DNA of 64,000 bases, from the NCBI RefSeq assembly GCF_011386835.1, contig NC_088810.1, forward strand, positions 2,232,001-2,296,000, in the 5' to 3' direction. This document shows positions 15,100-55,992 of this stretch, piece by piece (the first letter of the stretch is position 1; each line of letters opens with the position of its first letter). This DNA is from Chrysemys picta bellii (taxonomy: Eukaryota). A program made the translations under genes and the position numbers. Under the pieces are notes generated by a model, which made no database searches, was not told the origin of the DNA, and saw nothing but the letters and a program-made list of their open reading frames with translations.

Positions 15100-15713
15100 G
15101 GGGCACACAAAGGAATTGGGCTCTGGAGGAGGGATACGGGGTCCTTCCACTGTGAAAAGTAGTGCGTGGCTGAGAGCTGCTTTGCAGGGAGTTGGATGTT
15201 GTGTATTGAGGACTGATTGCAATGGAAAGCTATCGCTTTAAGAGTGGGGGCAGGGAGTGGAGATTCCTCGTCCTGCTGCCAGTCTTGGGGGCTCCATGGG
15301 GAAGCATGGGACCAGAAGCAGTCTGGAAGAAACCAGCCTGGAAAAAGGTAGGCTGAGTTGTCTCACTATCCTAGAGAGCAGCCTGCTTTGTCTCTCTCTT
15401 GCATGTGGCTGCTGTGTAGGATTGTTCTGGATCCCCAGAAACAGTCCCCTTAGGCTGCAACCTTCCAGCAGGAGTATTTGAGGTTTGTCTCTGACTGCTC
15501 CGGGTGGGTGCTGCGAACGTACCAGCTGCAAAGCGGGTCAGAGGTGCCGTTACTCCAGAGCTGTGGCAAACGGCTCAGTGATTCCACCCACTCTGTCGAC
15601 CAGCTCATGCATGTGCAGTCTGGTTTCATTTCAGCCGATCAGTGATCAATCCCCTGGCTGGAGACTTGGCTGCATCACAGACCCCAGCGACGATCTGCTG
15701 CTTCCCCATCACC

Positions 15714-18705
15714 ATGGAGGCTTCTCTTGTCGTCTGCATCCTCGCTGCTCTCCTGGCTACGGGTGAGTGGGGTCTGTTCCTACAGGGGCTGATTTCCTAA
15801 CTTCTCCAGCGTACCAACCGCTCAGAGCCACCTGCCGGGTGAAACCGTTAATTTAATGTAACTGATCATCAGCCACAGAATAACGGGGGCTGAGCTGGGA
15901 GCGTCTGGGTCCGAGGAGGAGAGGGCTGGAAGTCACAAAGTCCCCATGACAAGTGAAACAACGGGAGCGAATATTTACTCTTTAAATCACTAAAATGTGT
16001 CCTGACTGGGCAGTTTCAGAGCTGGCCAAGGGCCTTCCTGACAGGGGATTGTCTCTGCTCTGAAAGGCAGATCTGAATTTCAGTTCCAGGAGCTCAAGAC
16101 GATATAAAAGGCATTTCTGCAGGATCCCCACCCGGGGTCAGTCGGCCATAGTGCGTTGGTATCAATGGGGCCAGATCGAAGCTGGGGTCAGTTAAATTCA
16201 AGGGAAGGGACAAATCCTAGCTGTGTCATGTTCTCTCTTCTTCCCCAGGGTCCTGCCTGCAGTGTGAGGTTTGCGAAGGCCAAGGAACCAGCTGCACGGG
16301 CACCATGAAGACCTGCCCAGCTGGGCTGGACTCTTGTGCCATCTCTCTGACAATGGCTACATTGGGTAGGTGAGATGGAGCCTAACCAACCTGGGTCAGC
16401 GAGCAGGCTGGGGAGCCAGGATGCCTGGGTTCTAGTCCCTCCTCTGGGGCGGGGACTTCAGCCCAGATCCCTCCCCTCCTACGGTCGTGCCTGGTTTCCG
16501 GGGTGTGTGGGTGTGTCTGTTTCCCCTCTTGAAGCCGCCCCATATTGTTTAACTATTTCAAACATGCCCTGGAACCTGATCACCCACGTCCACAAAGAGT
16601 GTCCAACCCACTGGGTATCCGGGGGACCACCCCACCCCCATCTCCTCCGCTGGCTGGGCTTTATGCAGGGCCCGATCCGGTGGGAGTGCTCCAAGGGCGT
16701 CTCCTGGATGAGGCCCCGCAGGTGATATCAGCACGGGGGAACGCCTAGTTTGGGAATCCCACCATGGCTCAGGGGCGAGCAGGACGCACGGCGTTGGGAT
16801 TTCAGTGGCCTGGCATGTACCCACTGGTGGAAACTTTGGCAACGAAAGGGCTTTATGGGCCGAAGATTCGGGGCCCCCAGGGTTACGCGGCAGCTGAGTG
16901 GGGAGCTGGGGGATGTAAATGCTGGATTTAGGATTTAGAAAGCTGAAATGGCTTTCTCTAGCCCTGCGGGACCTCGGATTAGTCGCTTCCCCTCTCTGTG
17001 CCTCAGTTTCCTCCTGGCTAGAGGAAGGCTAATAGCACCTGGGTGTCGTTGTGAAGAGGGCGTCGATGGGGTGGGAGTGAAAGGGGAATATATCTCTGTC
17101 TTCTCCTCCTGTGCAGCGGGAGTGAACACCCAGCGCATTCACAAGGGCTGTGTGATGTCCAGCCAATGTAGAACCGGCCCCATCTCTATGAATTTGGGGC
17201 AGGGAATGACAACAAGGATGGGCGTCGCCTGCTGCGTGGGAGACGCCTGCAGAACAACCACCATTACAGGTACCTCTCCCCATCTCCGCCTCTCCTCCCC
17301 ATCCCCTGCACCTCCTGCCCCACGTTACCTTCCTGGGCCTGGGCCTCCTGCCCTGCAGGGGGCTCCCCAGGGAATAACACTGAGCCCCTGGGTGGGTGGA
17401 GTTTAGTGGGCGGGGCTTTAGGCTCCCACCAGGTGTGAACCCAGCTGACCCCACCCGGGGCGGGGTCCAGGGCTCCCTGCTGCAAACCTCTCCCCTGCCT
17501 CTGCTGCCCCCGGTGTCCCCAGAGCTACAGCTCCCCCTGCAGGGGCACCCAGGGCTGAGCTGTGCAGCCCCCAGCTGCTCTCCCTGCCCCGACGCCGCCT
17601 GGGGCGCGTCCCCCGAGCTGACTGCGTTTGCTCCGCTTCTTCCCAGTGCCCCCGACTGACACCAAACCCAACGGCCAGCGCTGCCCAGCCTGCTATGTGA
17701 TGAATGCTGGTCAATGCAATGAACAAATCATAGAGTGTACTGGATCTGAGACCCGATGTCTTGATGCTGCTGGAACCATAACAAGTGGTAACTTCAGTTC
17801 ATTTATTCTGGGGTTATTTTTCCTTTGTCCCCCCGCCCCCGTGCATAGGGCAGAAGCAAAACGCTGTGTCGGTTCCACGAGGTCAGGGGTTCACAAACTG
17901 TGGGTCAGGACTCGAAAGTGGGTCTCGACCTTATTTTAATGCCAGACGCTAACGACTCCTCTGAAGAAACCATCCCTGCTGCCAAAGAGCCTGCAATCTG
18001 AACAGGCAAAAGAAGGATCGTTCTCCCCATTTTAAAGATTGGGGAAACTGAGGCACGGAGCAGTGCCGTGACTTGCCCAATGTCACACAGGAAGGCTGTG
18101 GCAGGGAATTGAACCTAGTTTTGTGGAATCACACCATGGTGCCATCACTCACTACAAAGCCACCCTGCGTAGAGATCCCAGCGCTGCCACCAGCACTGAG
18201 CTGCTGCTTTGTAGATGAGTGGTGGGGCTAGTATAGGCCTGATCCATTATGAATACTGTTGGGGGCTCTAAGTGACATGCCCAAGGGCACACAGTGTGTC
18301 TGCCACAGAGGAGGAGGGGGATGCCATCCAGGCCCAGACAGGCTGGGGGGAGCAGAGCAGACAGGGAGACGGAGGCTGGGGGGGAGCTTGGTGGGGCCCT
18401 GAGGAGGGGGAAGCTGTTGTGTCCAAGTCCAGCTCAAAGAGTGAAGCTGCTTCCTTGCCACAATCAACTGCTTCCCTCCCGCCCCCGCAGGTCGAAACCC
18501 TGTGCAGATGGTCACGAAGGGCTGTGTTTCCCAGTCCATCTGCAACCAGCTACAAGTGAATTCGGGAACCGTTGCAGGGATCAATGCAAGTTTAACCACG
18601 GCCAAATGCACAGAGACCTACGGTCCGGCGGGCGGGGCACCAGGAGCAGCCGGGCTTCTCCTCCCGGCCCTCGCCGGGCTCCTCCTGCTGAATCTTCTCT
18701 CCTGA
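15714..18705 (+). CDS. Gene 2: two-LU-domain PLA2 inhibitor gamma / PINLYP-like protein. Coding exons 15714-15762, 16249-16365, 17117-17269, 17647-17787, 18491-18705
   Basis: Same exon sizes and phases as gene 1 (49/117/153/141/215 nt). Reads MEASLVVCILAALLATG-SCLQCEVCEGQGTSC...CCVGDACR...CPACYVMNAGQC...LLPALAGLLLLNLLS*. AATAAA at 18818-18823. Confidence 0.93.
17990..18130 (+). mobile_element. MIR-like SINE in intron 4, shared by all five paralogs (also about 5310-5420, 23190-23290, 40140-40230, 50630-50710)
   Basis: gggaaactgaggcac...gtgacttgcccaa.gtcacacag core in the same intronic position and orientation in each gene. Confidence 0.65.
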
Positions 18706-22534: not shown

Positions 22535-24989
22535 AGCAGAGGCATTACTGAGTGCGGTTCGGCCATTGCACTGGGTGGGAAATCAGGAGAGAAGCGTTAG
22601 CAGGAGGAGCCCAGTGAGGGCGGGAAGGAGGAGCCCGGCTGGTCCCAGAGCGGTGGTGGCTGCGCTGGTGGCCGCTGTGCATTTGGCCATGGTTAGATCT
22701 CCACTGAACCCTGCAAAGGTCACAGACCCTGCTTCTATCTGGGTGCAGACAGACGCGGTAGCGCAGCCCTTCATGGCGGTCTTCCTGGCAGTTCCACCTG
22801 CGGGCGAGGGGGAGAAGGAGATGGTCAGTGTGAGGGGCACAGCTCCACTCCTTGAGCCAGACAAGGACACAACCACCTGCCCCCGTCTCAGCTCTGAGCC
22901 CTGCCTAGGCCCCCACCGCCTCCATCTTCCCTTCGGCTCTGCTCCACCCAGCATGTGTGGCCCTGAACGGCCTCCCCCTTCTCCTGTACTGTGACACGGA
23001 CTCACTGTATGCCCTTGGACAAGTCACTTGCAGCCCCGGTCTAGAGCCCACCCATGACACCCGGATTGAATCAGGCCTGTATGAGACCGCTGTTCATCTA
23101 GCAGAGCAGCAGCTCCCTGTTGGTGGCAGAAGTGGGATCTGAAAGAAGGGTGGCTTCGTAGTGCGTTAAGGCACCATGATGGGACTCTGCAAAACAGGGG
23201 TCAGTTCCCCAGCCCTGCCACAGCCTTCCTGTGCGACCTTGGACAAGTCACGGCTGTACTCTGTGCCTCAGTTTCCCCATCTTTAAAATGGGGAGAAAGT
23301 TCCCCACTACACCTATTGAAATTGTAGGCTCTTTGGGGTCTGGACTATATCTCCCTATGAGACATTTAGTGCCCAGCACAACACGGATCCCTGATCTTCG
23401 CTGGGGTTCTGTTCAGTGCCCGGCATGACAGGGGCTCCCAGGACTAAACCAGCCCCTGCCACAAAGAGTTTACAGGCGAAACTATACACAGGCAACAGAT
23501 GGGAGGAGCACCAGAGGCACAGGGAGGGGAAGACACTGGCGCAAGGTCCCACTGGAGGCCAGTGCTGGGAACAGAACCCAGGAGTCCTGATCTGCAGCCG
23601 AAATCTTTCCCTAGCAGCCGCCACCCAGCGTCTCGCTTCTGCCCTATGAGAGGGGGGGGCACAACAAAGGAAAATAACCCCAGAATAAATGAACAGAAGT
23701 GACCTGATTTTAGGGTCCCGGTGATCTCGACACATTGGGTCTCGACTCCAGTACAATTTATGGTCTCTTCACGGCACTGCTCAGAGGACAGAGAGTAGCA
23801 GCCACGGCAGATTCGGCCATTGGGTTTGGTGTCAGCCGGGGGGCACTGGGAAGAAGTGGAGCAAACGCAGTCAGCTCGGGGGACGAGCCCCAGGCGGCGT
23901 CGGGGCAGGGAGAGCAGTTGGGGGCTGCACAGCTCAGCCCTGGGCGCCCCCTGCAGGGGGAGCTGTAGCTCTGGGGACACCGGGGGCAGCAGGGGCAGGG
24001 GAGAGGTTTGCAGCAGGGAGCCCTGGACCCCACCCCGGGTGGGGCCAGGCGGGTTCACACCTGGGGGCAGCCTAAAGCCCCACCCACTAAACTCCACCCA
24101 GCCAGGGGCTCAGTGTTATTCCATGGGGCGCCCCCTGCAGGGTGGGAGGACCAGGCTCCGGAAGCTAATGTGGGGCAGGTTCCTGGCAGCAGGAGGTGCA
24201 GGGGATGGTGGAGAAGAGGTGGAGCTGGGGAGATGTACCTAAAATGGGGGATGGTATGCAGGCATCCCCTTGGCAGCAGGTGAAGCTCGTCCTTCTTGTC
24301 TTTCCCATCCCAAAGTTCATAGGGAAGGGGCTGTCTTTACATTGGCTGGATGTCGCACAGCCCATGATAATGATCTGGGTCTCTCCAGCTGCACAGGAGG
24401 ACAAGTCCGAGATTTAGTCCCCTTCCACTCCCACCCCATCAAGGCCCTCTTCACAACGACACCCATATGCCATTAGCCTTCCTCTCTCTACCCATGGCAC
24501 AGAGAGGGGAAGTGACTCCCCCGACTTCCCACAGGGCTACACTAAATTTTAGCACCTAAATCCAGCATTTAGATCCTCTAGCTCCCCACTCATCTGCTGC
24601 CTAACCCCGGGGGCCCCGAATCTCCTGAGACACCCACCCGGAAGCCAGGGGGCCAGGCACGACCGTAGGAGGGGAGAGATCTGGGCTGAAGACCTCAACC
24701 CGATTCAGGCCGAGTGGGGATTTGAACTTGTCTCCCTCAGGGTCCAGCTGAGTAGGGTGACCAGCTCGCAAGAGTGAAATATCAGGACACATTGGGCGAG
24801 CGGGGCGGGGGGAGGGGAGAGGACGACAATGACAATGACAGACACAGGTGCACAGAGCCATGAGAGGGGGCCCTAGGAAGCTAGAAGACGGGTTGTACGG
24901 CCCCTGCTGCAGTCCGCACCTCAAGCCACAGGGCAAGGACACCTATGGAATTCAATGAGAATTTTGCATGTGAATTGATGTACCTAGTT

Positions 24990-25545
24990 CTGAGATTATA
25001 AAGCCAGAAGGGATCCGGTGATCACCTGGTCTCACCGCCTGTATAGCACAGACATAGAACTTTCCCAAAATAATTCCTAGAGGATAGTTTTTAGAAAAAG
25101 CTTTTAGAAAAACACCTTAGTATATTGTTAATCGTTAATCACTCTCACCATTGAAAAGGTATGCCTTATACCCAGTCTGAATTTGTCTAGCTGCAACTGC
25201 CAACCCTTGGTTCATGCTCTACCTTTCTCTGGTAGACTGAAGTGCCCATTATTAACTATTTGTTCCCCATGTAGATACTTACAGTCTATGACCAAGTCAC
25301 TTCTTAACCTTCTTTTTGTTAAGCTAAATAGATCGAGGTCCTTGAGTCGATCACTATAAGGCATGTTTTATAATCCTTTAATCAGTCTTGTGACTCTTCT
25401 CTGAACACTCTCCAATTTATCAATATCCTGCTTAAATTGTGCACCCCAGAACTGGACACAGGATTCCAGCAGTGGTTGCACCAGTGCCAAATACAGAGAT
25501 AAAATAACCTCTCTACTCCTGCTTGAGATTCCCCTATTCAGGCAT
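24990..25545 (-). mobile_element. CR1 fragment nested in the hAT insertion
   Basis: ORF 25368-25553 (REVILSLYLALVQPLLESCVQFWG...LESVQRRVTRLIKGL) is the CR1 ORF2 C-terminus. Confidence 0.85.
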
Positions 25546-26204
25546 CTGGTCACCCTATTTCTGTAGGCATTTTCCCAGGTTTTTTTGTAAAAATCAAAAC
25601 TGAACTGCCCCAGAAATTCTGGCCTGTGGAATCATCGTGAAACTCGCATGGCTCCAACCCTGCCGATGAACCTTTAGATCCACTGCACAGACTTCTGCCA
25701 CTTGAGCTAATGGAGTAAGTGATGGCAGAGGCAGTAGGTTGTCATCCTATATGTGATAGATTAGCTCTATAGGGGGATGAGACACTTTTTTTGCCACTGG
25801 GTTTCACAGATATCTGCTGACAGAAGAGGAACTGTGAAACTCAGGAATCCTGGGTCTATCCCAGGCTCCTGAATGGAGTGGTCTCTAGTAGTCAAAGACC
25901 CTTCTTCCCCGTCCCCTCCAGTCTATGTCTATCCTATTGCTGTCTAACCCGCCCCAGCTCCTCATCTGATTTCAACTGCCCCCCACTACAGCCCTGGATT
26001 CCTTGTCCCAGTTTCCTGGTCCTGTCTCACTCTCCTCTCTCCCCGCCCCCATCCCTGAGATGGGATGTTCGTTCCAGACTGGCAAAATTATAAGGCTTCC
26101 CAACATTTCAACACTTCCCATTCTAATTTTTCGGTTGCTTAACTATAGGCTAGCTCTGCCTACAACAAAGCCTATTCAGAACCTCTGATTAAGGGGATTA
26201 TAAG

Positions 26205-27502
26205 TGTAAGCAGAGTCCGGATGAGCTCTCCCCTGACATCTGGTGGTGAATTATGGCGAGTGTGGAAAAGAACTCCAGGGGCTGATCTTGTTTGCATAGG
26301 CACACCCATCCGCCTGGCATGAAACCACAGCAACTCAAAGTGGTTACTTTGGCTGGTGTGGGACCCCCAGTTTCTCTGTTATTGGGGCAGGAAGAATAAA
26401 GTTTTGTTACCCTGATTCTGTGAATCAAGGCCAGTGGAACTGTTGTATGACAGAAGGACTGAGTGAGTCCTTCACCATTACCTAAGTAGCACTTGCTTGA
26501 CAAGGGGCATGGGTTACAAAACCCAGTGAATGGAGAGGGGATGGGCCCTTCTCTGAGGGGTTGAAACACCAATTGCACTATTTCTTCTTTCCACTGTTGA
26601 ATGTCAGAGCTAACTTTGATTCCATTAGGAGTCTAGTTACAGACTGCTGATCTGAATTCACTTTGGGCCAATGGTGCACTAGCACTGGGGCTCCCTGAGC
26701 TGAAATTGCTAAGAGCTGAAATCACAAAAGAGCTGAGATCACTGAGGCTGTGTTAACTAGTGGGGGAGCCTGAAGCTATATTGCTAAGCGGCTGGCGGAG
26801 CAGCGAGCAGAGTGGAGCCTTGCGAGCGGAGTGGCTGGAGGAGCAGCGAGCAGAGCAGAGCGGAGCCTTGTGGGAGCGGCCCAAGGGACGGCTGAAGTGG
26901 AGCAGAGCTGAGCGGCTCACAGGTCGGTGAGCAGAGCGGAGCAGCTGCCAGAGCAGTTCGTGGGACGGCGGGAGCAGCTCACGGGGCAGCTGGTGGAGTG
27001 GAGCGGCTCGTGGTGAAGGCTGCGGCGGAACCCCGTCGGCCTCGGATCACGTAAGGTGCCCCTTAACGCCCTGCGTTCCCCCCCCCCGAACTCTGGGGCT
27101 GCACTGACCAGGGACAGAGACTTTGGGGGGTTGTTGGACTTTTGGGACTTTGGTGAACCTTGGGTTGCTGGTTTCAAGAACCAAAGGGAAAGGACACAGC
27201 CCAACTTGCTGGGGTGGGTTTTTTGCTCCTGGTTTGTGTTATGAATCCTGTTTGTGGTGTTTTTCCAATTTAATGCTGATGTCGTTTACCTCATGTTATT
27301 AAACATTTTCTGTTACACTCAGACTCCGTGCTTGCGAGAGGGGAAGTATTGCCTCTTAGGGGCGCCCAGGGGGTGGTATGTAATTGTCCCAGGTCACTGG
27401 GTGGGGGCTCGAGCCGGTTTTGCATTGCGTTATTGAAACGGAACCCCTAGATACAGAACCCGGCCCTTGTTGCTGCCAACTTAGATGGGCAGAAGGGTTA
27501 CA
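26205..27502 (+). mobile_element. Solo LTR (1298 bp)
   Basis: TGTAAG...GGTTACA ends; 4-bp TSD TAAG (26201-26204, 27503-27506); internal gagcagagcggagc repeats. Confidence 0.85.
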
Positions 27503-27932
27503 TAAGTGTAGCAACATCCATCATAGCTAGTCACCAAAGATTGAACCTGAGCCATCCAGACTTAAAAGCATGAGCTTCTACTACTTGAGTTCAAGATATA
27601 ACTCCCTTAGCTGGGAGCTATACGGTTATCCTCTGAAAATCCACCAGAGGAGGGCACAAAACACAGGTTGGACAGTGAATTGCAAAAGTGCCAAATATTA
27701 GTATTAGACCTGCAATACTTTTCACAATGAACATCAGCGGGGGATAAACTGGGAGTTTAAGAATATTTGGAAAACAATTTTAGAATAACATTCAGTGCTG
27801 TGGTTTAAAAGAAAAAACAACTGTTAAAACTCATAACTTAGCAGTATTCAGTGTTTGGAAAAAAACCAACTTTTAGGAGCTCTGGGATACAAGTTAAGAA
27901 TGTTGAAACAGGAAGATGTTCTGCTTAGTTAC

Positions 27933-29961
27933 CACCTGGGCGAGGCGGCGTGCTACGGAATACACCTGGGCGAGGCGGCGTGCTATGGAATACACCTGGG
28001 CGAGGCGGCGTGCTATGGAATACACGTGGGCGAGGCGGCGTGCTATGGAATACACCTGGGCGAGGCGGCGTGCTATGGAATACACCTGGGCGAGGCGGCG
28101 TGCTATGGAATACACCTGGGCGAGGCGGCGTGCTATGGAATACACGTGGGCGAGGCGGCGTGCTACGGAATACACCTGGGCGAGGCGGCGTGCTATGGAA
28201 TACACGCGGGCGAGGCGGCGTGCTATGGAATACACCTGGGCGAGGCGGCGTGCTATGGAATACACGCGGGCGAGGCGGCGTGCTATGGAATACACCTGGG
28301 CGAGGCGGCGTGCTATGGAATACACCTGGGCGAGGCGGCGTGCTATGGAATACACCTGGGCGAGGCGGCGTGCTATGGAATACACGTGGGCGAGGCGGCG
28401 TGCTATGGAATACACCTGGGCGAGGCGGCGTGCTATGGAATACACGCGGGCGAGGCGGCGTGCTACGGAATACACGCGGGCGAGGCGGCGTGCTACGGAA
28501 TACACGCGGGCGAGGCGGCGTGCTACGGAATACACGCGGGCGAGGCGGCGTGCTATGGAATACACGCGGGCGAGGCGGCGTGCTACGGAATACACGCGGG
28601 CGAGGCGGCGTGCTATGGAATACACCTGGGCGAGGCGACGTGCTATGGAATACACCTGGGCGAGGCGGCGGGCGAGGCGGCGTGCTATGGAATACACCTG
28701 GGCGAGGCGACGTGCTATGGAATACACGTGGGCGAGGCGGCGGGCGAGGCGGCGTGCTATGGAATACACGTGGGCAAGGCGGCGTGCTATGGAATACACG
28801 TGGGCGAGGCGGCGTGCTATGGAATACACCTGGGCGAGGCGGCGTGCTACGGAATACACCTGGGCGAGGCGGCGTGCTGTGTAATACACGCGGGCGAGGC
28901 GGCGTGCTGTGTAATACACGCGGGCGAGGCGGCGTGCTACGGAATACACGCGGGCGAGGCGGCGTGCTACGGAATACACGCGGGCGAGGCGGCCTGCTAT
29001 GGAATACACCTGGGCGAGGCGGCGTGCTATGGAATACACCTGGGCGAGGCGGCGTGCTACGGAATACACCTGGGCGAGGCGGCGTGCTGTGTAATACACG
29101 TGGGCGAGGCGGCGTGCTGTGTAATACACGCGGGCGAGGCGGCGTGCTACGGAATACACGCGGGCGAGGCGGCGTGCTACGGAATACACGCGGGCGAGGC
29201 GGCCTGCTATGGAATACACGTGGGCGAGGCGGCGTGCTATGGAATACACCTGGGCGAGGCGGCGTGCTATGGAATACACGTGGGCGAGGCGGCGTGCTAT
29301 GGAATACACTTGGGCGAGGCGACGTGCTATGGAATACACCTGGGCGAGGCGGCGGGCGAGGCGGCGTGCTATGGAATACACCTGGGCGAGGCGACGTGCT
29401 ATGGAATACACGTGGGCGAGGCGGCGGGCGAGGCGGCGTGCTATGGAATACACGTGGGCGGGGCGGCGTGCTATGGAATACACGTGGGCGAGGCGGCGTG
29501 CTATGGAATACACCTGGGCGAGGCGGCGTGCTACGGAATACACCTGGGCGAGGCGGCGTGCTACGGAATACACCTGGGCGAGGCGGCGTGCTACGGAATA
29601 CACCTGGGCGAGGTGGCGTGCTGTGTAATACACGCGGGCGAGGCGGCGTGCTGTGTAATACACGCGGGCGAGGCGGCGTGCTACGGAATACACGCGGGCG
29701 AGGCGGCGTGCTACGGAATACACGCGGGCGAGGCGGCCTGCTATGGAATACACCTGGGCGAGGCGGCGTGCTATGGAATACACCTGGGCGAGGCGGCGTG
29801 CTATGGAATACACCTGGGCGAGGCGGCGTGCTATGGAATACACGTGGGCGAGGCGGCGTGCTATGGAATACACCTGGGCGAGGCGGCGTGCTATGGAATA
29901 CACCTGGGCGAGGCGGCGTGCTATGGAATACACTTGGGCGAGGCGGCGTGCTATGGAATAC
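27933..29961. repeat. 30-bp minisatellite, about 66 units (cacctgggcgaggcggcgtgctatggaata), with four 12-bp internal duplications
   Basis: Directly visible. Length 2029 bp = 66x30 + 4x12 + 1. Confidence 0.98.
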
Positions 29962-30234
29962 TTGCAAGATTTCACTGGAATGTTTTACAATATAGAGCAG
30001 CACAATGCTGATTCCATTGATATCGTTGAGCAATTCAGGCTGATTTTATTTCAGCCCACAGCTTAATAGTTTTCAATACTATAGATCACAATTTTCAGCT
30101 CAGTTGGTCTGAACATGCAGAGGTTTAAAATTGCTATGCTCTAAACTGTATATTAACTCCAATGTTATAAACCTGCATGTCAGAGAACTGTGTGCCACTA
30201 CTACTAGACAGTGGCACAGGGCAATTCAGTGTGA

Positions 30235-30500
30235 ATCACAGAAATGTAGGACTGGAAGGGACAACAACAGGTCATCTAGTCAAACCCCTGCACTGAGGCA
30301 GGACTGAGTAATAACAACACTAGACCATCCTTGACAGGGGTTTGTCTAACCTCTTAAGAAACTCCAATGACTGCTATTCCATAACCTCTCTAGGTAATTT
30401 GTCCAGTGCTTAACTACCTCTACAGTTAGGAAGTTTTTCCTAATGTCGAACCTAAATCTCCCTTGCTACAATTTAAGCCCATTGCTTCTTTTTCCTGCAT
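30235..30500 (-). mobile_element. CR1 3' fragment
   Basis: ggactggaaggga...ggtcatctagtc...taacctaaatctcccttgct is a CR1 3'-end pattern. Confidence 0.7.
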
Positions 30501-30519
30501 GTCCTGAGTGGGATGGGGA

Positions 30520-32100
30520 TGAGTCCAGGCAGTGGGATTGGGGGGAGGGAGGTCGAGGAAGTCGGTGGGTGTGTGGGGATGGACCAGGGGAAGCAGGGTG
30601 GAGGAACTGAGGGGGACAGGACTGCAACTGGGGGAGGCGGGGGGGCCTGAGAGAGATGGGACAGGACTGGGATGGGGGGAGCAGGGTAGGGGCTGAGGGG
30701 AGCATGAATGGGACAGGGTAGAGAGCTGTGTAGAGTGGGGCGGGGCGGGGGAGACAATGGGGCTGGGCTGGGGAGGGTTGGGGGATTTGGGAGAGGGACA
30801 GGGACTGGAAGGGATGAGACAGAGGGGAGCAGGACTGGAATGGAGGGAAGTTGCGGGGGTGGGACAGCAGGGGAAGCGATGGGGTGGGATGACGGGAGAG
30901 GCTGAAGAACAGATTTGGGGTGGGGCAGGGACTGAGGTCAGTGGGTTTGGGGTGGGAGATACAGGTGGAACTGCGGGGGAGGCTAAGGGAACAGGTCAGG
31001 GTGAGGGCTGAGGGCAGTGGGTTGGGTCTACACTGGCACCTCTCAGCATTGCTGTGCTGGGCGGCAGACCTGCGCCAGCGCTACCCTGGCGATGGAAGAG
31101 TCCTCAGTGGAAATGCAGACTTCATGACACAGACCCTCCTCCTCACTTCAAACCTGGCGCTGCTCTGGTCAGTCACTAGGCTCTTGTCACTTTCAAACCC
31201 ATGCAAGGTATCCGGCTCTTTTTCAGTTCTCAGGTTAAGAAAAACCTCTACATTCTGTGAGGGCTTCAGCATTCACATTCCTACTTCACAAACTGTCTGC
31301 CTGACACATTGCTCCCAGGGCATTCATCTTTAGTCATTATCGGCAGGTCCATCAGATTAACGAGCAACATGGGGAGGCAACACAATGGTGTCAAGGATTT
31401 TTAATTTTTCAAACCACTTTGGCCTCAACAGGGATAACAGCAAATCTGGACAGAGCAGATGGGTGTCAGGAGGGGTTTGGGTATTTATTCATTTTTTTTT
31501 TAAGTGAAAATGTTTGGGTCTGAGCAAAGGCTGCAAACTTCCCTTTGGAAACCTCTGCTGATCTTTTGCCCCAGGGGCTAACGACAGCCTGGAATCTGGG
31601 ACAGATTTCCATATCCATGCAGGGTGAGATGATTGGGGGGGGGCAAGGGGAGAGACTGTGGGGGAGGTGTTGGAACAGGGGCAGGGACTGAGGGCAGTGG
31701 ATTGAGGGTGGGGAGCACAAGGGGGACACTGTGGGGGAGGCAGAGGGAACAGGGTCAGGGTGGGGGCTGAGGGCAGTGGATTGAGGGTGGGGGCCACAGG
31801 GGGGACACTGCGGGGGAGGCAGAGGGAACAGGGTGGGGGCTGAGGGCAGTGGATTGAGGGTGAGGGGCACAGGGGGAACACTGCGGGGGCGGCTGAGGGA
31901 AGAGGGTCAGGGTGGGGTCTGAGGGCAGTGGGTCGGGTGAGATGATTGGGGGGAGGGGAGGGACTGTGGGGGAGGCAGAGGGAACAGGGTCAGGGGGGCT
32001 GAGGGCAGTGGATTGAGGTTGGGGGGCACAGGGGGGACTGCGGGGGAGGCTGAGGGAACAGGGTCAGGGTGGGGGCTGAGGGCAGTGCGGCTGAGGGGAG
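30520..32100. repeat. G-rich low-complexity and imperfect tandem repeats (30520-31030; about 75-bp units at 31620-32100)
   Basis: Repeated gagggcagtggattgagggt...gcagagggaacagggt units. Confidence 0.7.
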
Positions 32101-33128
32101 TCCCCCCAGAGGGACCTGCCAGGGGGCCAGTGAGCCCAGCAGTGCCCACCTGGAGCGGCTCCCAGGAAGAATCCAGCAGGCAGGTCCCTCCCAGTCCCTC
32201 TGGCCCCTTCCTAGGGTCGGGTCGGGTCGAGGGGAGGGGGGCGGCGGGGGCTCTCTGCCGGAGTCTACAAGCCCCGCCCCGCTGCAGCATGCAGGGGAGT
32301 GAAACCTCCTCACTGCCTCTCCGTGTGCCAGGGCAGGGGCAGGGCTGTGCTCTCTGCAGGCTCCTGCCGGCCAGGCGGGGGCCCTGTGGGCGCGCCGGGA
32401 GCTCAGCTGCGCGCTGCCCCAGGGCCCAGGGGGAGGAAAGGTGAGTGGCGCTGGTGGCGCCGGCTTGCCGCGGTCCCCCTCATATAGGGTGACCAGACGT
32501 CCCGACCAGTGTAAGGTCGGGACGCGGGACAAGTCCCCTAAAATCGGGACTGTCCCGATAATATCGGGACGTCTGGTCACCCTACAGCTGAGCCCCTAGC
32601 TGCTGGGGTCTCCTAGCAGCCCCTCCTCCACAGCCGTCATTCGCAAGGAAGGGCTGACCCGGGCCACACCCCGGATTCCCAGCGAGGGGTTCCCAGCTGT
32701 AGATCCCAAGCAGAGCTGGGTGCCTCCATTCAGCCCAGACTTAGGGGCTTAACTCCGGGCGAGGGTCGGGGCTTAAGCCACACCCCTTTCCTCAGCATTT
32801 CCTATTGACTGGTTTAGGCAGTTGTCTGCTCTGCGTGCTGGCTCTGGCAGATCCCCTCCTCAGGTACCTCCCTCTCCCCATGCACTGTACAGGGAGCCGG
32901 GCCCCGACCCACTGGCTGGCGAGTCACCTGGGGGTTCGGCATCGCAATGCTGAGCCGAAGGCCCCATTGGTGAGCTAGTCACAGGGTCTGGCATAGAACC
33001 CAGGCGTCCTGGCTCCTTAACCGCTGCTCAGACCTACCCACCCCACGCCCTTCCCAGAGCTGGGACTAGGAGAGGATCCAGATGTCCTGGCTTCCCAGCC
33101 TGTTCACTGGCCCAAGTTGGGTGGGGTC

Positions 33129-34493
33129 TAGGGTTACCATCCATCCGTATTTCCCCAGACATGTCCGGCTTTTTCGTCTTTAAATAGCCGTCCGGGAGGA
33201 ATTGGTAACAAGGTTAAAAGGTCTGGGATTTTTCCTCCTCCCCTCCCTTCCATGCAGAATGCGGCGCGGCTGACTGGGCGGCTGGGCCTGATTGAGCCGC
33301 TCCCATTGGCCTCCAGCAGCCAGAGCCCCTCCCCTGCTCACCTCTGCTGCCTCAGCACTCTGCGGGGGAGGCATGTTTTGCCTCCACGTGGAGGAGCCAG
33401 CATCTGACCGGCATGGGCATGGTAAGGGGAGTCCCGGGGGGGCAGTCAGGGAGCAGGGGGAGGGTTGGATGGGTCCCCGGCCTCCACCTGCTACCCCCCT
33501 CTGCGCGTCCCCCCCACACCTCTCCCATGCCTGCTTGTGCTGCTGGAGTAGCACATTCCTACGCCCTCCCGGCAGCAACTGCTGTCTTCTGCCCCAGGGT
33601 CCTAGTGCCCCCTATCCACTCATGGCAAAGCAGGCTGCCCTTACCCTGCCCATCCACCCTAACCCTGAGCCTCTCCAACGCCCCAAACCCCTCATCCCCA
33701 GCCCCAGACCTCATCCCCCCGCACCCTAATCCTCTGCCCCAGCCCTGAGCCCCCTCCTGCATCATGAACCCCTCATCCTGAGCCCCAACCCTCATCCCCC
33801 CACACCCTAATCCTCTGCCCCAGCCCTGAGCCCCCTCCTGCATCATGAACCCCTCATCCTCATACCCACAGCCCTCACCCCTGCACCCCTCCTATCCCCA
33901 AACTCCCTCCCAAACCCTTTACCCCTTCCCACACCCCCCTCCTGCCCTCAAACTCTCTCCCAAAGCCTGCACCCCCTCCCTTTTCACTGCCTCCCACCCC
34001 CAAACTCCATCCCAGAGCCTGCACCCCTCACCCCCTCCTGCACACCCACCCCCTGCCCCAACCCGGAACCTGAACCCAGCACCCAAACTTCATCCCAGAG
34101 CCTGCACCCTGCATCCCTCCTGCGCCCTAATCCCCAGCCCAGGACCCGCACCCCAGACCTCCTCCCCCCACCCAATCCCCCTCCCAGAGCCTTAGGCAGG
34201 TGGGGGGGCGGAGTTGGGGGAGCGGGTTCTGGGCACCACCAAAATTTCTACAAACCTGCCACCCATGTATAAGGGTCGGGGCAGTCAGGGGACAGGTAGG
34301 GTCCTAGTGGGGCAGTTAGTGTGGGGGGTTCTCAGGAGGCGGCAGTCAGGGGACAAGAAGCGGGGGGGGGTTGGAGGTTCTGAGGGGGGCAGTCAGGGGG
34401 TGGGAGGGAGTGAATGGGGGTGGGGCAGGGCTAGAATGGGGCTTCCCCCCCCCCAGTGTCCTCTTTTTTGATTGTGGAAATATGGTAACCCTA
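33129..34493. mobile_element. hAT MITE (1365 bp) 20 bp from the gene 3 exon 2 donor
   Basis: TIRs TAGGGTTACCAT / ATGGTAACCCTA; perfect 8-bp TSD GTGGGGTC (33121-33128, 34494-34501). Confidence 0.9.
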
Positions 34494-36146
34494 GTGGGGT
34501 CCCTCTCACCTACCCAATGTGGATTCTATCCAAAAAATGCCACAAAAGTCCTGCCCAGCACCGCAGGTCTGTCGGTTGCCCGTGCATCTGATTCCTTCGC
34601 CTCTGCAAACCTCACACTGCAGACAGGCCCCTGGAGCCAGAGAGAGAACATGAGCCACCTGGATTTGTCCCTCCCTCGCCTTCCCCGGGGCTCTGTAGGG
34701 AAGCTCCGATTACAGCGCCCTGGGGTCCCTCATCCACCGTGCTGCCCCAGTTCAGTCCTTGTTCCCCGCTGGCTACAGACATTTCATGCTGCTCAGGGGC
34801 TGCATCTCCCCAGGTTCGCTGCAGATTTTAGTTCCCCAATGGGTTTTTCCCACCTCACAAACCCCAGAGAGATCCCCAGTGGGTGTGAGCTGGTCTCACT
34901 CTCAGCAAGGGCCAATTGACACCTGTCATCAAATCCAGTGCAGCTGCGCCCCCCCCTGACACCGGCTGGGCCCTGCCCCACTGACTCCAGTGCAGCAGTG
35001 CCCCATTGACACCAGCTGGTCCCTGGCCCCATTGACACCGGCTGGGGATCGCATTGACCCGCCCTTCAGATTCCCTTGAGCTCCTGCTACTGAAATTCAG
35101 ATCTGCTGCCTGTCACAAAACAGACAATCCCTGTTCGAAATGCCCTTGGCCTCTGGCCAGCTCTGAAACGTGCCCAGTCATGACTGAGTTTTAGTGATTT
35201 AAACTGTAAATGTTTCCTCCCATTTCCACAATTGTTTCACTCGCTGTCACAGGGACTTTGTGACTTCCAGCCCTCTCCTCCTGGGACGTTGTCACTCTGA
35301 CGCCCCCAGCTCAGCCCCCGTTATTCTGTGGCTGCGTTTCGGTTACGTGCGTTAACAGTTTTACCCGGCAGGCGGCTCTGAGCTGTTTATACATTGGAGA
35401 AGTTAGGAAATCAGCCCCTGAAGGAACAGACCCAACTCACCCGTAGCCAGGAGAGCAGCGAGGATGCAGACGGCAAGAGAAGCCTCCATGGTGTTGGGGA
35501 AGCAGTAGATCGGCACTGGGGTCTGTGGTGCAGCCAAATCTCCAGTTCGGGGGTTTGTCACAGACGGTCTGAAATGAGATAAGAAGGGAACTTGCACATG
35601 TAGGAGTCAGTTGATAGAGTGGGAGGAACCACAGAGCCATTTGCCACAGTTCTGGGGTAGCCGCGCCTCTGACCCCTTCCTGGCTGGTATGTTCATGGTA
35701 CCCACACAGAGAAGTCACAGACAAATATCAAATACTCCTGCTGGAAGGTTGCAGTGTAAAATGCCTTTCTTTCTGCGAATCCAACAAAATTACACACAAG
35801 AACCCAAATCAAGATAGAGGCGAAGCAGGCTGCTTTATACAACAGAAAGAGACAAAGCCAGTGGCTCTCTAAACAGAGGGTGACAAAGCAGGCTGCTCCC
35901 TACGGCAGGAAGAGACAGCTCACCCACCTTGATTCTACTCCTGGCTCTAGGAGGGGACTGGGACCTAGTGGTCAGAGAAGTGGGGCCTGGAGCCAGGACT
36001 TCTCGGTTCTATCGCTGGCTCTGGGAGGGGAGTAGGTTCTCATGGTTGGACCAGGAAGGCTGGGGCCAGGACTCCGGGGTTCTATTCCTGCTCTGGGAGG
36101 GGAGTGGGGTCTAGCGGTTAGAGCACCAACAGACCAGAGGGATGTG

Positions 36147-36440
36147 ACTTACCAAAACTCCTTAGGGGTTCAGGCTGAGTAGCGTTTGCCAGGGGTGGAG
36201 CAGATGGATAGTTCAGTGAAGCAGAAAAGATTTGCCAATGTCTGTCTCTCTCCTCTTATAGAAGGGCTCTGCTACGTGGACTGATGTAATGCACTTTTGT
36301 TTGGTTGAGTCCATAAGTTCCTAGTCCCCTCGCCAGCCCTGCCCCCACCCAACGGTGACCCAATTTGGACACATGAGCACATTGACAAATTCGCCACCCT
36401 TCCTGTTGAGAAAAAATCACAGGGATGAGTGAAACCGCCT
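36147..36440 (-). promoter_or_regulatory. Putative promoter and non-coding first exon of gene 3
   Basis: TATAAG (36260-36255) and GTAAGT donor (36152-36147), homologous to the gene 2 module. Acceptor tttcag| gives exon start 35568. Confidence 0.65.
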
Positions 36441-36719
36441 CCCCTTTAAATCATGGGAGGGCAGGGGGGGGGGCAATATGGGGAAGCAGGTCACACAGTG
36501 GGGGGGGCAGGACTCAGATTCCTGGGTTCTATTTCTGCCTTGCTAAGGGCATGTGGGTTAAGGGCAGGACTTCTGGGTCTCATTCCTGCCCCTGGGAGCA
36601 GTGGGGTGAAGTGGTTAGAGGAGTGTGTGGGGGGGAGTGGCAGCACTCCTGGGTTCTGCAGAGTGGGGAGTACTGTGCTCCCCTTAGAGCAGGGTGGGGT
36701 CCGCAGCAGGGCCCAGGGG

Positions 36720-37789: not shown

Positions 37790-38720
37790 AGGAACAGCCG
37801 GCGTGGATTTATCAAGAACAAATCATGTCAAACCAACCTGGTTTCCTACTTTGACAGAGCAACTGGCCTAGTGGACGGAGGGAAGCAGCAGACATGAGAA
37901 ATCTTGATTTGAAGGAGGCTTTTGACACCATCCCAGATGACATCCTCACAAGCAAACAGGCAAATGAGGATGAGGTGACATTACTATATTAGGTGGGTGC
38001 ACAACTGATCAAAAACCCTCCTCAAAGAGTATTTATCAACGGTTCACTGTCAGACTTGCAGAGTGTCTCTAGTGGGGTTCCGGGGTCAGTCCTGGGTCTG
38101 GTGCGATCCAATATTTTCATGAATGACTTGGGTAATGGAGCGGAGAGTGTGCTTTGCAGATGACACCCAGCTGGGAGGGGTTGCAAGCACTTTGGAGGGC
38201 AGGATTAGCATTCAAAACGCCCTTGACAAATTGGAGAATTGGTCTGAATTCAACAAGATGGAACTCAATCAAGACAAGTGCAAAGTACGACACTCAGGAA
38301 CACAAAAAGATTAAATGCACACCTACAAAATGGGGCATCACTGGCTAGGGGGTCGTACTGCTGACAAGGATCTGGGGGTGATAGTGGATCACAAATTGAA
38401 CATGAGCCAACAACATGATGCAGTTGCAAAAAAATAAAAAGGCTAATCTCATTCTGGGGTGTAGTAATGGGTGTGTTGTACATGAGACACGGAAGGTCAT
38501 TGTCCTGCTCTGTTCGGCCCTGGGGAGGCCCCAGCTGGAGAACTGGGCCCAGTTCTGGGCACCGCGCTTTAGGAGAGATGGAGACAAACTGGAGAGAGTC
38601 CCGAGGAGAGCAACAGAAATGATTAAAGGCTTAGAAAACCCGACCTGTGAGGAAAGATTAAAAAACTGAGGGGGGGACCTGAGAACTGTCCTCAAATGCA
38701 TTCAGGGCTGTTATTAATCA
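37790..38720 (+). mobile_element. Degenerate CR1 fragment downstream of gene 4
   Basis: SCQTNLVSYFD, FADDTQLGG and LGRPQLENWAQFWAP motifs. Confidence 0.9.
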
Positions 38721-39512: not shown

Positions 39513-42500
39513 TCAGGAGAGAAATTTCAGCAGGAGGAGCCCAGTGAGGGTGGGAAGAAGGAGCCCGGCTGGTCCCAGAGCTGTGCCGGCCGCGCTGGTG
39601 GCTGCTCTGCATGTGTGCTTGGGTAGATCTCCACGGATCCCCAGGAAGGTCCCAGAACCTGCATTTACCTGGGAGCACACGGACTCGGTAACGCAGCCCT
39701 TCATGATGATCTTAATGGTATTTCCACCTGTATGGGGGGGGGAGGAGGAAGGAGGCGATCGGGGTGAGGGGCGCAGCACCATTCCTTGACTGGACTAAGA
39801 AATAACAGCCCCCCCTTCCTCAACTCTGCCCCTGTGACCCCCACTGAGCCCCCCCCCAGCCTCCATCTCCCCATCTCCTCTGCTCTCCCCAGCATGTCTG
39901 GCCCTGGATGGCCTCCCCCGCTCCTTTAATGTGACACAGACTCACAGGGTGTCCATGAACAAGTCACTTGCAGTCCCGACCTAGATCCCGCCAACAACAC
40001 CTGGATTGACTCATGCCTGTTTTATCCCCACAGTTCATCTAACAAAGCAGCAGCTCCCTGTTGGTGGCAGCAGTGGGATCTCTAAGAAGGGTGGCTTCAC
40101 AGTGAGTTAAGGCACCATGATGGGACTTTGCAAAGCTAGGCTCAGTTCCGAGCCCTGCCACAGCCTCCCGGTGTGACCTGGGGCAAGTCACGGCACTGCT
40201 CAGTGCCTCTGTTTCCCCATATGTTAAATGGGGAGAATGATCCCCACTATGCCTACAGAGATTGCAGGCTCTTTGGGGCACAGACTTTATCTCCCTATGA
40301 GTTTTTAGAGCCCAGCACAGCCTGGGTCCCTTTTCTTTCCTGGGGGTCTGCGCAGTCCAGGCATGAGAGGGGCTCCCAATACTATATCAGACCCTACCAT
40401 GAAGAGCTTAGAGATTGAACTATAGACAGGCAATGGATGGAGGAGAACCAGAGGAACAGGGAGGGGGAGACACTGGCGCAAGGTCACACCGGAGGCCAGC
40501 GCTGGGAACAGATCCCAGGTGTCCTGATCTGCAGCCGATACCTTTCCCTAGTGGCCTCCACCCAGCATCTCGCTTCTGCTCTACGCGGGGGGAAAAGAGC
40601 GGAGGAAAAATACCCCCAGAATAAATGAACGGAAGTTACCAGATTTTAGGGGCCCGGCAACGTCCAAACAGTGGGTCTCGGCTCCAGTACACTGTATGGT
40701 CTCTTCACGGCACTGCTCAGAGGACAGAGAGTAGCAGCCACGGCAGCTCCGGCCATTGGGTTTGGTGTCAGCCGGGGGCACTGGGAAGAAGCGGAGCAAA
40801 CGCAGTCAGCTCGGGGGACGAGCCCCAGGCGGCGTCGGGGCAGGGAGAGCAGCTGGGGGCTGCACAGCTCAGCCCTGGGTGCCCCTGCAGGGGGAGCTGT
40901 AGCTCCGGGGGCAGCAGGGGCAGGGGAGAGGTTTGCAGCAGGGTGGGGTCAGCTGGGTTCACACCTGGTAGCAGCCTAGAGCCCCGCCCACTAAACTCCA
41001 CCCACCCAGGGGCTCAATGTTATTCAATGGGGCGCCCCCTGCAGGGTGGGAGGACCAGTCTCAGGAAGTTAACGTGGGGCACGTTCCAGGCAGCAGGAGG
41101 TGCAGGGGATGAGGGAGGAGCTGCAGAGATGTACCTTTAACAGAGTCCGGTGTGCAGTTGTCTGTCTGGCAGCAGGTGATGCTCATCCTTCTGGCCTTTG
41201 CCGTCCCAAAATTCATGGAGATGGCTCCAGCTTCACATTGGCTGGGTGACAAACAGCTCTTGAGAACGTTCTGGGTCTTCCTTCCCGCTGCACAGGAGAA
41301 GAAGTCTGAGATTTATTCCCATTCCACTCTCACCCCATCGACGTCCTCTTCACAACGACGGCCCTGTGCCATTAGCCTTCCTCTACCCATCGGGAAACTG
41401 AGGCACACAGTGAGGAAAGTGACTCACCCCACATCCCGCAGGGCTAGAGAAAGCAATTTCAGGAGCAAAATCCAGCATTTAGATCCTCCAACTGCCTACT
41501 CAGCCGATGCCTAACCCTGGGGGCCCCGAATCTCCTGCCCATAAAGTCCTTTTGTTGCCAAAGTTTCTACCAGTGGGTATGTGCAGGGCCACCCAAACCC
41601 CAACACCATGCATCCCGCTCACCCCTGAGCCACGGCGGGATTCACAGACTAGGCCTTAACCTGACGATATCACCTGCGGGGCCTGATCCTGGGGACACCC
41701 TCAGAGCACAACCAATGGATCGGGCCCTGCACAAAGCCCAGCCAAGGCAGGAGATGGAGGGGGGTTGCCTCCCATATACCCAAGAGCCCAGGGGGTCGGA
41801 TGCTCCCCATGGATGTGGGGGAATCAGGGTCCAGAGAATGTTTAACTATTTCATACAATGTGGGGCAACTTCAAAAAGGGAGACTGAGAGACCCCCTCGG
41901 AGGCCAAGGGGTCGGGCACCACCGTAGGAGGGGAGAGATCTGGGCTGAAGACCCCGGCCAAATTCGGTTCCCACTTGGCTCCCCCATGGCCCAGCTGAGC
42001 GCCCAACCGCTGGGGTCTCCTGGAAGCCCCTCTTCCACTGCCGTCATAGTCAAAGAAGGGCTGACCTGGTCCAGAAGCTGGACTCCCGGTGAGTGGTTCC
42101 CGGCTGTGGACCCCAAGCAGAGCTGGGCACCTCCGTGCCGCCGGGACTCAGGGCCGAACTTAGGGTGAGGGGCGGGGCTTAGGCCACACCCCTCTCCTCA
42201 GCATTTCCTATTGGCTGGCTTTTGTGGATCCCATCCTCAGGCACCTCCCTCTCCCCATGCACACAACGGGGAGCCCGGCCCCATCCCACTGGCTGGCAAG
42301 TCACCTGGAGTTCGGCATCGCAGTGCTAAGCCAAAGGCCCCGTTGGGGAACTAGCCACAGGGTGTGGCATAGAGCCCATGCGTCTTGGCTCCTTAACCGC
42401 TGCTCAGACCCACCCACCCCACGCCCTTCCCAGACCTGGGACTAGGAGAGGACCCAGGCGTCCTGGATCCCCACCATCTTCACTGACCCATGTTGAGTAG

Positions 42501-43098
42501 GGTCCATCTCACCTACCCGCTGTGTCTTCTGTCAGAGTGATGCCACAAGAGTCTTCCCTATTTCGGCAGGTATCTAGATCGCCCGTGCATCTGGTTCCTG
42601 ATCCATCGCAAACCTCACACCGCAGACCGGCCCCTGGAGACGGAGAGAGAACATGAGTCCAGTGCAGATGTGCCCCCTGACACCGGCTGGGGATCACATA
42701 TAAATGCCCTTCAAATAGCCTGTCACACAACAGACAATCCCCATTCGAAATGCCCTTGGCCTCTGGCCAGCTCTGAAACATGCCCAGTCACAACACGATT
42801 CTAGTGATTTAAACTGTAAATATTTCCTCCCATTTCCACAATTGTTTCACTCGCTGTCACAGGGACTTTGTGACTTCCAGCCCTCTCCTCCTGGGACGTT
42901 GTCACTCAGACGCCCCCAGCTCAGCCCCGTTATTCTGCGGCTGCTTTTCGGTTACATTAACTAACAGTTTCATCCGGCAGGCGGCTCTGAGCTGTTGGCA
43001 CGTTGGAGAAGTTAGGAAATCAGCCCCTGTAGGAACAGACCCAACTCACCCGTAGCCAGGAGAGCAGCGAGGATGCAGACGGCAAGAGAAGCCTCCAT
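39513..43098 (-). CDS. Gene 4: two-LU-domain PLA2 inhibitor gamma / PINLYP-like protein. Exons 43098-43050, 42633-42517, 41287-41135, 40780-40640, 39727-39513
   Basis: Intact spliced ORF MEASLAVCILAALLATG-AGLRCEVCDGSGTRC...CCQTDNCT...CRGCYSLSSEQC...LLPTLTGLLLLKFLS*. GT-AG phase-1 introns. AATAAA (- strand) at 39368-39373. Confidence 0.93.
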
Positions 43099-43405
43099 GG
43101 TGATGGGGAAACAGTAGATCGGCGCTGGGGTCTGTGATGCAACCAAATCTCCAGTTGGAGGATTTATCACAGACAGGCTGAAATGAGATCAGAAGGGAAC
43201 TTGCACATGCATAAACCAGTTAACAGTGTGAGTGAAACCACAGAGCCATTTGCCACAATTCTGGGGTAGCTGTGCCTCTCTGACCCCTTAGTGGCTGGTA
43301 TGTTGGTGGCACCCACACAGAGAAGTCACAGACAAATATCAAATACTCCTTCTGGAAAGTTGCAGTGTAAAATGACTTTCTTTCTGAGAAGTAAGGGATA
43401 AGTAA

Positions 43406-43586
43406 GGGGGAGGGATAGCTCAGTGGTTTGAGCATTGGCCTGCTAAACCCAGGGTTGTGAGCTCAATCGTTGAGGGGGCCATTTAGGGATCTGGGGCAAA
43501 AATCTGTCTGGGGATTGGTCCTGCTTTGAGCAGGGGGTTGGACTAGATGACCTCCTGAGGTCCCTTCCAACCCTGATATTCTATGA
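43406..43586 (+). mobile_element. Tortoise-type tRNA-derived SINE with CR1 3' tail, in the gene 4 5' UTR intron
   Basis: ggggagggatagctcagtggtttgagc A-box head and gaggtcccttccaaccctgatattctatga CR1 tail. Absent at the matching site of gene 3 (about 35775). Confidence 0.9.
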
Positions 43587-43870
43587 ATCCAGCAAAATTA
43601 CACACAAGACCCCAAAACAAGAGAGAGACAAAGCAGGCTGCTCTCTTCCGCACCAGGAGACAGCTTGCCCACTTTGATTGTAGTCCTGGATCCAGGAGGG
43701 GACTGGGACCTAGTGGTTAGAGAAGTGGGGCTAGGAGCCAGGACACCTGGGTCCTATCACTGGTCTCGAGGTTGGACCAGGGAGGGATGGGGCCAGGACT
43801 CCTGGGTTCTATTCCTGCTCTGAAGATGGAAGAAGGGTCTGGCAGTTAGAGCACCAACAGACCCAATGTG

Positions 43871-44190
43871 ACTTACCAAATCTCCTTAGGGGTTCAGGCT
43901 GAGTAATGTTTGCCGGGGGTGGAGCAGATGGATAGTTCAGTGAAGCAGAAAAGATTTGACAATGTCTGTCTCTCTCTTCCCCTTATAGAAGGGCTCTGGT
44001 ACATGCGCAGATGTAATACTGAAACTTTAAAATCCCTGCATTCTTCATTTGCTTCGTTCCATAAGTTCCTAGTCCCCTCGCCAGCACTGCCCCCACTCAC
44101 CAGTGACACAATTTCGACACACAAGCATGTTGAGAAATTCGCCAGCCTTCCTGCTGAGAAACAACCACAGGGATTCTTGAAACCACATCT
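43871..44190 (-). promoter_or_regulatory. Putative promoter and non-coding first exon of gene 4
   Basis: TATAAG (43987-43982) and GTAAGT donor (43876-43871). Acceptor tttcag| gives exon start 43177. Confidence 0.65.
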
Positions 44191-44949
44191 CCTTTAAATC
44201 TTGGGGGGCAACATGGGGAAGCAGGTCACGCGCTGGATGGGGAAGCAGGACTCCTGGGTCCTCTTCCTGGCCTACTAAGGGCATGTGGATCAAGGGTAGG
44301 ACTCTTGGGTCTCTTTTCCGCCCCGGAAGAAGTGGGGTGAAGTGGTTAGAGGAGTAGGGGCGGGCAGTGGCAGGACTCCTGGGTTCTGCGGAGTGGGGAG
44401 TAGGGTGTACCACTTAGAGCAGGGTCGGGTTGCGACTGGCAGTCAGGATTCCTGGGTTCCATAGAAATTTTAGTGGGGTCCAGTAGTTAAAACTGGTTGT
44501 CAGGACTCCTGGGTTCTATCCACAGTTCTGGGAAGGGAGTGGGGTCTAGTGGGTTAGAGCTGGCCGGATGCCTGGGTTCTATCCACAGTTCTGGGGTGGG
44601 GGAGAGGGACTGGGAGCCAGGACTCCTGGGTTCTAGCTTAATCTCTGTGAGGGGAGTGGGGGCAAGTAGGATAGAGTGGGGGGGAGGGCTGGGAGCCAGG
44701 ATGCCTGGGTTCTATCCCCAGCTGTGGGGGGTGGGGCCTAGTGAGTTAGAGCAGTGGGGGCTAGGGACTGAGCACTGTCGCTATGCCAACCTACCCCCAG
44801 TGTAGAGGTAGCTAGGCTGATGGAAGCTACCATTGCTTGGGGAGGCGGAGGTCCGACAGCCACAGAACACCCCCCCCCCGCCCCGTAACCTGTGTTTACG
44901 CTCTGCCGTAGCTGTCCTGCTACAGCACCCATCTCATAGACCCTGCAGC

Positions 44950-55950: not shown

Positions 55951-55992
55951 TCTGGGAGGGAAGTGGGGTCAGCAGTATACCAGAGGGATGTT

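Follow-up and report, generated by a model that had tools for sequence, protein, structure and literature searches.

How did two small hAT transposons and the 6927 bp of DNA that separate them come to be enclosed by a single perfect target site duplication (TSD)? This question is raised by a locus of the turtle Chrysemys picta bellii (assembly GCF_011386835.1, contig NC_088810.1, positions 2,232,001 to 2,296,000 of the forward strand). The whole stretch of 64,000 nucleotides was analysed and is referred to here as the window, and all coordinates are positions within it. The inserted block occupies 24753-32584 (7,832 bp), both junctions having been read directly, and is composed of an old element (A), a non-coding cargo and an apparently young element (B). 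Judged from its sequence, the block probably entered as one unit, through one hAT transposase reaction acting on the outer ends of the two elements. The parts of the block are listed below in order.

24745-24752, no strand: left copy of the TSD (CAGCTGAG), which occurs once in paralogous copies of the surrounding sequence
24753-25557, plus strand: element A, an old non-autonomous hAT transposon of 805 bp with both termini, an exact 12-mer standing at each end
24753-24789, plus strand: outer left terminus of A with the subterminal motif ATCAGGACA, a 3'-type end in reverse complement that aligns to the 3' end of a 436-bp relative (L006)
24975-25545, minus strand: fragment of an interspersed repeat (X) nested in A, with 69-73% matches to five copies in the window
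25546-25557, minus strand: inner right terminus of A (CTGGTCACCCTA), exact 12-mer
25558-32484, no strand: non-coding cargo of 6927 bp, beginning with tttctgta and ending with ccctcata
32485-32584, plus strand: element B, a complete MER81-like hAT miniature inverted-repeat transposable element (MITE) of 100 bp with perfect 21-bp terminal inverted repeats (TIRs)
32585-32592, no strand: right copy of the TSD (CAGCTGAG), read at the junction

The short TIRs TAGGGTGACCAG and CTGGTCACCCTA sit exactly at the insertion boundaries 24753 and 32584, and the two copies of the 8-bp TSD lie directly outside them, identical at eight of eight bases. The left junction reads ...tccCAGCTGAG followed by TAGGGTGACCAG..., and the right junction reads ...CTGGTCACCCTA followed by CAGCTGAGccc.... 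A single perfect TSD around the outer TIRs had been reported in a first-pass annotation of this DNA and is borne out by these junctions. The block start given there (24754) is one base late, because the junction reading places it at 24753.

About five diverged copies (~81% identity) of the sequence that surrounds the insertion are present in the window. The same annotation had noted that paralogs show the empty site, and three such paralogous sites were identified in the window, each carrying the 8-mer once.

52634-52641, no strand: empty target site in paralog U5, reading CAGCTCAG
41992-41999, no strand: empty target site in paralog U4, with CAGCTGAG once and continuous flanks
47030-47037, no strand: empty target site in a partial paralog, with CAGCTGAG once and continuous flanks

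In paralog U5, the left flank of the insertion aligns as far as 52641 and the right flank aligns from 52634, so that the two alignments overlap by exactly the 8 bp of CAGCTCAG. The flank overlap and the single 8-mer in the paralogs indicate that the block is an insertion relative to the ancestral unit and that its boundaries lie at transposon termini. The same signature is given by an internal control, a simple hAT insertion of 1,365 bp (33129-34493) with the TIR TAGGGTTACCAT and the perfect TSD GTGGGGTC, for which the paralogous empty site is 53162-53169. This control element is non-autonomous, has a C-rich repetitive interior and lies 545 bp to the right of the composite. A 216-aa open reading frame (ORF) that crosses the empty site of U5 is not protein-like in appearance.

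The exact 12-mer TAGGGTGACCAG occurs at five sites in the window, namely 3189 (+), 24753 (+), 25546-25557 (-), 32485 (+) and 32573-32584 (-), against a chance expectation of about 0.008 matches for both strands of 64 kb. Along the block, a left end and a right end precede the cargo, and a second left end and right end follow it. Inner TIRs had previously been placed at 25546-25557 and 32485-32496, and the exact 12-mer is present at both positions. The inner flanks recorded with them, tttctgta (25558-25565) and ccctcata (32477-32484), also read as stated and match neither each other nor the TSD. Element A is flanked by CAGCTGAG and TTTCTGTA and element B by CCCTCATA and CAGCTGAG; neither bounding element has a TSD of its own. 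The inner termini point toward the cargo, which is the geometry of flanking DNA lying between two elements and not that of nesting within one.

Two types of end were defined for the family from a 436-bp relative on a metagenome contig (L006) and from a short MITE that lies elsewhere in the window.

3189-3312: MITE of 124 bp that shares the terminus family and lies in a paralogous unit of reverse orientation

The 5'-type end of the family reads TAGGGTGACCAGACGTCCCGA..., and the 3'-type end, in reverse complement, reads TAGGGTGACCAGAT.GCAAG.GTGA.AAATCAGGACA. The outer left end of A is of the 3'-type and matches the left end of the 124-bp MITE along 37 bp at 86% identity, and the right end of B is of the 5'-type and shows 84% identity over 50 bp to the other end of that MITE. 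Since one is a 3'-type end and the other a 5'-type end, the two TSD-bearing outer ends appear to form a proper pair. The perfect TSD outside two proper hAT termini, taken together with the clean empty site, argues that a transposase integrated the segment extending from the left end of A to the right end of B.

The 124-bp MITE, which serves as a second internal control, is missing from the paralogous units at ~34691 and ~53360. Its TSD is decayed (CAATGTGG / CTCTGTGA on the minus strand), so this MITE predates the composite. The exact 21-nt terminus TAGGGTGACCAGACGTCCCGA also ends non-autonomous hAT copies in seven metagenome contigs (L001-L007; MDSQ01.../MDSP01...), one of which carries a whole 436-bp copy of the terminus family (L006:1-436). 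These contigs are AT-rich (36-40% GC) and eukaryotic, and their termini only were examined. The presence of the 21-nt terminus in such contigs suggests that the terminus family is widespread beyond amniotes or has been horizontally transferred.

Element A is an older, damaged relative of the family to which B belongs. The CpG observed/expected ratio (o/e) of A is 0.23-0.48, the value of 0.23 being that of the part occupied by a long interspersed nuclear element (LINE). The inner end of A is unambiguous for 12-13 bases only; further in, the match is at best weak and the differences are of the CpG-decay type. The first-pass annotation described A and B as both two-ended, which holds clearly for B and, as regards A, for the exact 12-mers at its ends, with the inner end extending to no more than those 12-13 bases. 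The LINE part is the fragment of repeat X, which matches copies at 46301-46519, 59857-60064, 38508-38639, 48993-49101 and 9865-9960. This fragment reaches the inner terminus of A and does not continue past 25557. A copy of repeat X at 9452-10100 overlaps an antisense ORF with an RVT_1 domain, so that X probably represents the 3' region of a non-LTR retrotransposon (LINE). The ORF with this reverse transcriptase domain belongs to the LINE-like repeat and lies at 9790-10542 on the minus strand (RVT_1, E=1.9e-17).

Element B contains nine CpGs, all of which are intact, and its CpG o/e is 1.07 versus ~0.3 in the flanks. The intact CpGs and the high ratio suggest that B is young. In a search of 281 bases, B matched the Rfam family mir-584 over its full length (model positions 1-97) with 34.2 bits and E=1.6e-5, the gathering score of the family being 80. 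No match other than that to mir-584 at B was obtained in an Rfam scan of 23500-35000. The human mir-584 gene is given as derived from MER81, a hAT-Blackjack element (PMC9409130, table 3). The assignment of the termini family to hAT-Blackjack/MER81, proposed in the first-pass annotation, is tentative; the match of B to mir-584 supports it indirectly, with a score that is below the gathering threshold. A score of 34 bits lies far below 80, which argues that B is a MER81-like MITE and a transposon relative of mir-584, not a mir-584 microRNA gene. Element B appears to share with the MER81 MITEs of mammals and the mir-584 hairpin (RF01016) the inverted termini of ~21 bases (TAGGGTGACCAG.CGTCCCG.) and the overall hairpin length; it differs from mir-584 in its score under the gathering score and in its intact CpGs, the sign of a young copy. 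Element B folds into a near-perfect hairpin and illustrates the origin of the mir-584 family from MER81-type MITEs.

Between the two elements lies a cargo that comprises minisatellites, fragments of old repeats and a stretch of high GC content. Its recognizable parts are as follows.

27933-29961, no strand: CpG-rich 30-bp minisatellite of 68 copies with a 684-bp higher-order period
30233-30490, plus strand: second old X-type (LINE-like) repeat fragment, 70% match to 9452-9707
31638-32087, no strand: G-rich 79-bp minisatellite, with a detached unit at 30918-31027
32088-32484, no strand: unique stretch of 73% GC at the right edge of the cargo, adjoining B; CpG o/e 0.44; ends GGAAAG/GTGAGT...

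No long ORF was found in the cargo outside the minisatellites. In 20 stop-free pieces of the inserted block, of at least 60 aa and from outside the 30-bp minisatellite, no Pfam hit to a transposase, a BED finger or a hAT dimerisation domain was obtained at E<=0.1, and the lone Pfam match in these pieces (LEP503) is at chance level. The 30-bp minisatellite contains 273 CpGs (o/e 1.36), and all six of its frames are open for ~700 codons, which gives rise to spurious long ORFs. The unique segments of the cargo include 25558-26750, 27510-27932 and 31028-31637. A scan of metagenomes for a 29-mer of the cargo gave no match, and a protein-word search with the ORF that crosses the boundary of cargo and B (31993-32580, minus strand) returned no sequence, the ORF itself included. 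The possibility that repeat X is circularly permuted between A and the cargo was considered and rejected, because both fragments begin at the same end of X and are independent copies.

The surroundings of the block consist of a GC-rich unit of a few kb that is present in about five copies in both orientations, with roughly 78-90% identity. The long ORFs of the paralogous flanking units gave no Pfam hit.

2000-5000, 15400-17700, 23750-36500, 40690-44200 and 51345-56300, both orientations: copies of the GC-rich unit

In the proposed reaction, a transposase would bring the outer end of A, which is old and damaged, together with the far end of the young element B, the two elements lying ~7 kb apart in the donor. 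The DNA between the paired ends would be carried along, and an 8-bp target duplication would be produced. By then, the inner end of A would have ceased to be a good substrate, since no more than 12-13 of its bases survive, decay has reached its CpGs and it adjoins a LINE fragment. Among ends with the inverted orientation that pairing requires, the closest competent one would have been the far (right) end of the recently inserted B; the near end of B has the same orientation as the outer end of A and could not pair with it. The order in the donor may have been A-cargo-B, as in macrotransposition, or the used ends may have faced each other, as in a reversed-ends composite insertion. These two processes have the same topology and differ only in the arrangement of the cargo in the donor. 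The present copy may be the first product of such an event, or it may have been copied later from a composite family that already existed.

Several observations weigh against integration of the block through the outer ends of two elements. All of the empty sites lie in paralogs (~81% identity), not in alleles or orthologs, and the completeness of A rests on the short inner match of 12-13 bases. Within the window, neither a donor locus, nor a donor excision footprint (TTTCTG..CTCATA), nor a second copy of any unique segment of the cargo was found. The outer ends taken together also resemble one ordinary 124-bp MITE, so that replacement of the interior of a single MITE is conceivable. Such a replacement could have taken place in situ if an ordinary MITE had inserted with its TSD and been excised, and if repair of the gap from both flanks had switched to ectopic copies of the A type and the B type, with synthesis running beyond these copies into their flanking DNA before the two new strands were joined. 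The outermost 37 bp on one side and 50 bp on the other match the two ends of one 124-bp MITE family, which fits this account, and homology among MITE copies would explain why the inner termini lie exactly where the cargo starts. It is nevertheless improbable, because several kb of ectopic synthesis, two templates and a final join are needed where transposition by the outer ends needs one event; in addition, B is a complete canonical MER81-like unit with no visible hybrid, and no recognizable junction is present in the cargo. A somewhat less improbable account, still unlikely, is that a long non-autonomous hAT family with the structure MITE-DNA-MITE had already been amplified and that the block is one of its copies, placed here by routine transposition, the composite origin lying earlier. 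The lack of a second copy of the unique cargo in the 64 kb, though the terminus family is present there at three further sites, speaks against such a family, and so does the resemblance of the cargo, with its long minisatellites and old repeat fragments, to ordinary genomic DNA; the evidence is weak either way.

The alternative raised in the first-pass annotation itself was a single old autonomous element with nested partial insertions, taken here as a hAT-Blackjack element with a decayed interior that such insertions have filled. The outer ends do form a pair of one 5'-type and one 3'-type end, and the size of the block is within the range of autonomous hAT elements plus insertions. This alternative is not upheld and is very improbable, because none of the stop-free pieces gave a hit to the transposase, BED finger or dimerisation domains, because the inner termini are aimed at the cargo as they would be at flanking DNA, a geometry that nested insertion cannot produce, and because B has no TSD of its own and retains its CpGs while the remainder is decayed. 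An artefact of assembly, in which sequences were wrongly joined at repeated MITE copies so that foreign DNA came to lie between the halves of one MITE, can be given equally little credence. MITEs are multi-copy and the 2-kb minisatellite of the cargo is hard to assemble, but the left end of A and B share a 12-base terminus only, which is too little for a mis-join, and two exact mis-joins leading back to the same 8-mer would be required. Integration of the segment from A to B in one transposase reaction remains the probable explanation. The earlier proposal of composite movement is upheld in its anatomy (two two-ended elements of the same family, one TSD, mismatched inner flanks and empty sites) and is partly supported overall.

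Mobilization of this kind is well known in maize. A natural Tam3L macrotransposon at the Wc locus of maize was confirmed by a matching 8-bp TSD at its two outer junctions (10.1101/082677). For the Ac/Ds and Tam3L macrotransposons of maize, the sources also include Huang and Dooner (2008), as cited in 10.1101/082677 and PMC4270019, and Wang et al. (2022), as cited in PMC10175614. Maize also has composite insertions that enclose flanking DNA between Ac termini, and these are explained by reversed-ends transposition with re-replication (PMC4270019). The turtle block resembles the Ac/Ds and Tam3L macrotransposons in its membership of the hAT superfamily, in the arrangement of two elements in one orientation, in the use of the outer ends, in the carriage of intervening host DNA and in the one 8-bp TSD around the whole. 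It differs from the maize macrotransposons in having a vertebrate host, in being bounded by very small non-autonomous MITEs that are unequal in age, and in being known from sequence alone. With the composite insertions of maize, it shares a transposon at each edge, competent termini, an 8-bp TSD and donor DNA inside; the reversed-ends model predicts a cargo of two joined donor segments, often with a linked tandem duplication (PMC4270019; PMC3744419). The bacterial composite transposons (two insertion sequence copies plus cargo) are similar in that a transposase acting on the outer ends of two elements moves the intervening DNA, but they use other transposase families, and the bounding elements in the turtle are not copies of each other and encode nothing. 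In a limited search of the literature, no hAT macrotransposition in a vertebrate was found, and the open-access papers that use the term concern plants or cite the maize work. As far as was found, the mechanism has not been described in vertebrates.

Cut-and-paste transposons of vertebrates are usually credited with small insertions and exapted fragments, not with the movement of kilobases of unrelated host DNA. It may be suggested, tentatively and with more doubt than confidence, that a Blackjack-type hAT transposase in the turtle lineage repeatedly mobilized multi-kb segments of host DNA, bringing together ends of MITEs that lie near each other. If this were true, macrotransposition would repeatedly and naturally give rise, in a vertebrate, to shuffled sequence and to segmental duplications at dispersed sites, and the event at this locus would have brought two minisatellites and a GC-rich segment into a region that is itself GC-rich and duplicated. 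The value of the locus depends on finding the donor. The combination of two MITEs of the same family, one TSD and mismatched inner flanks offers a signature for genome-wide searches, and a clean two-element product in a reptile would show that the mechanism known from maize operates in amniotes too.

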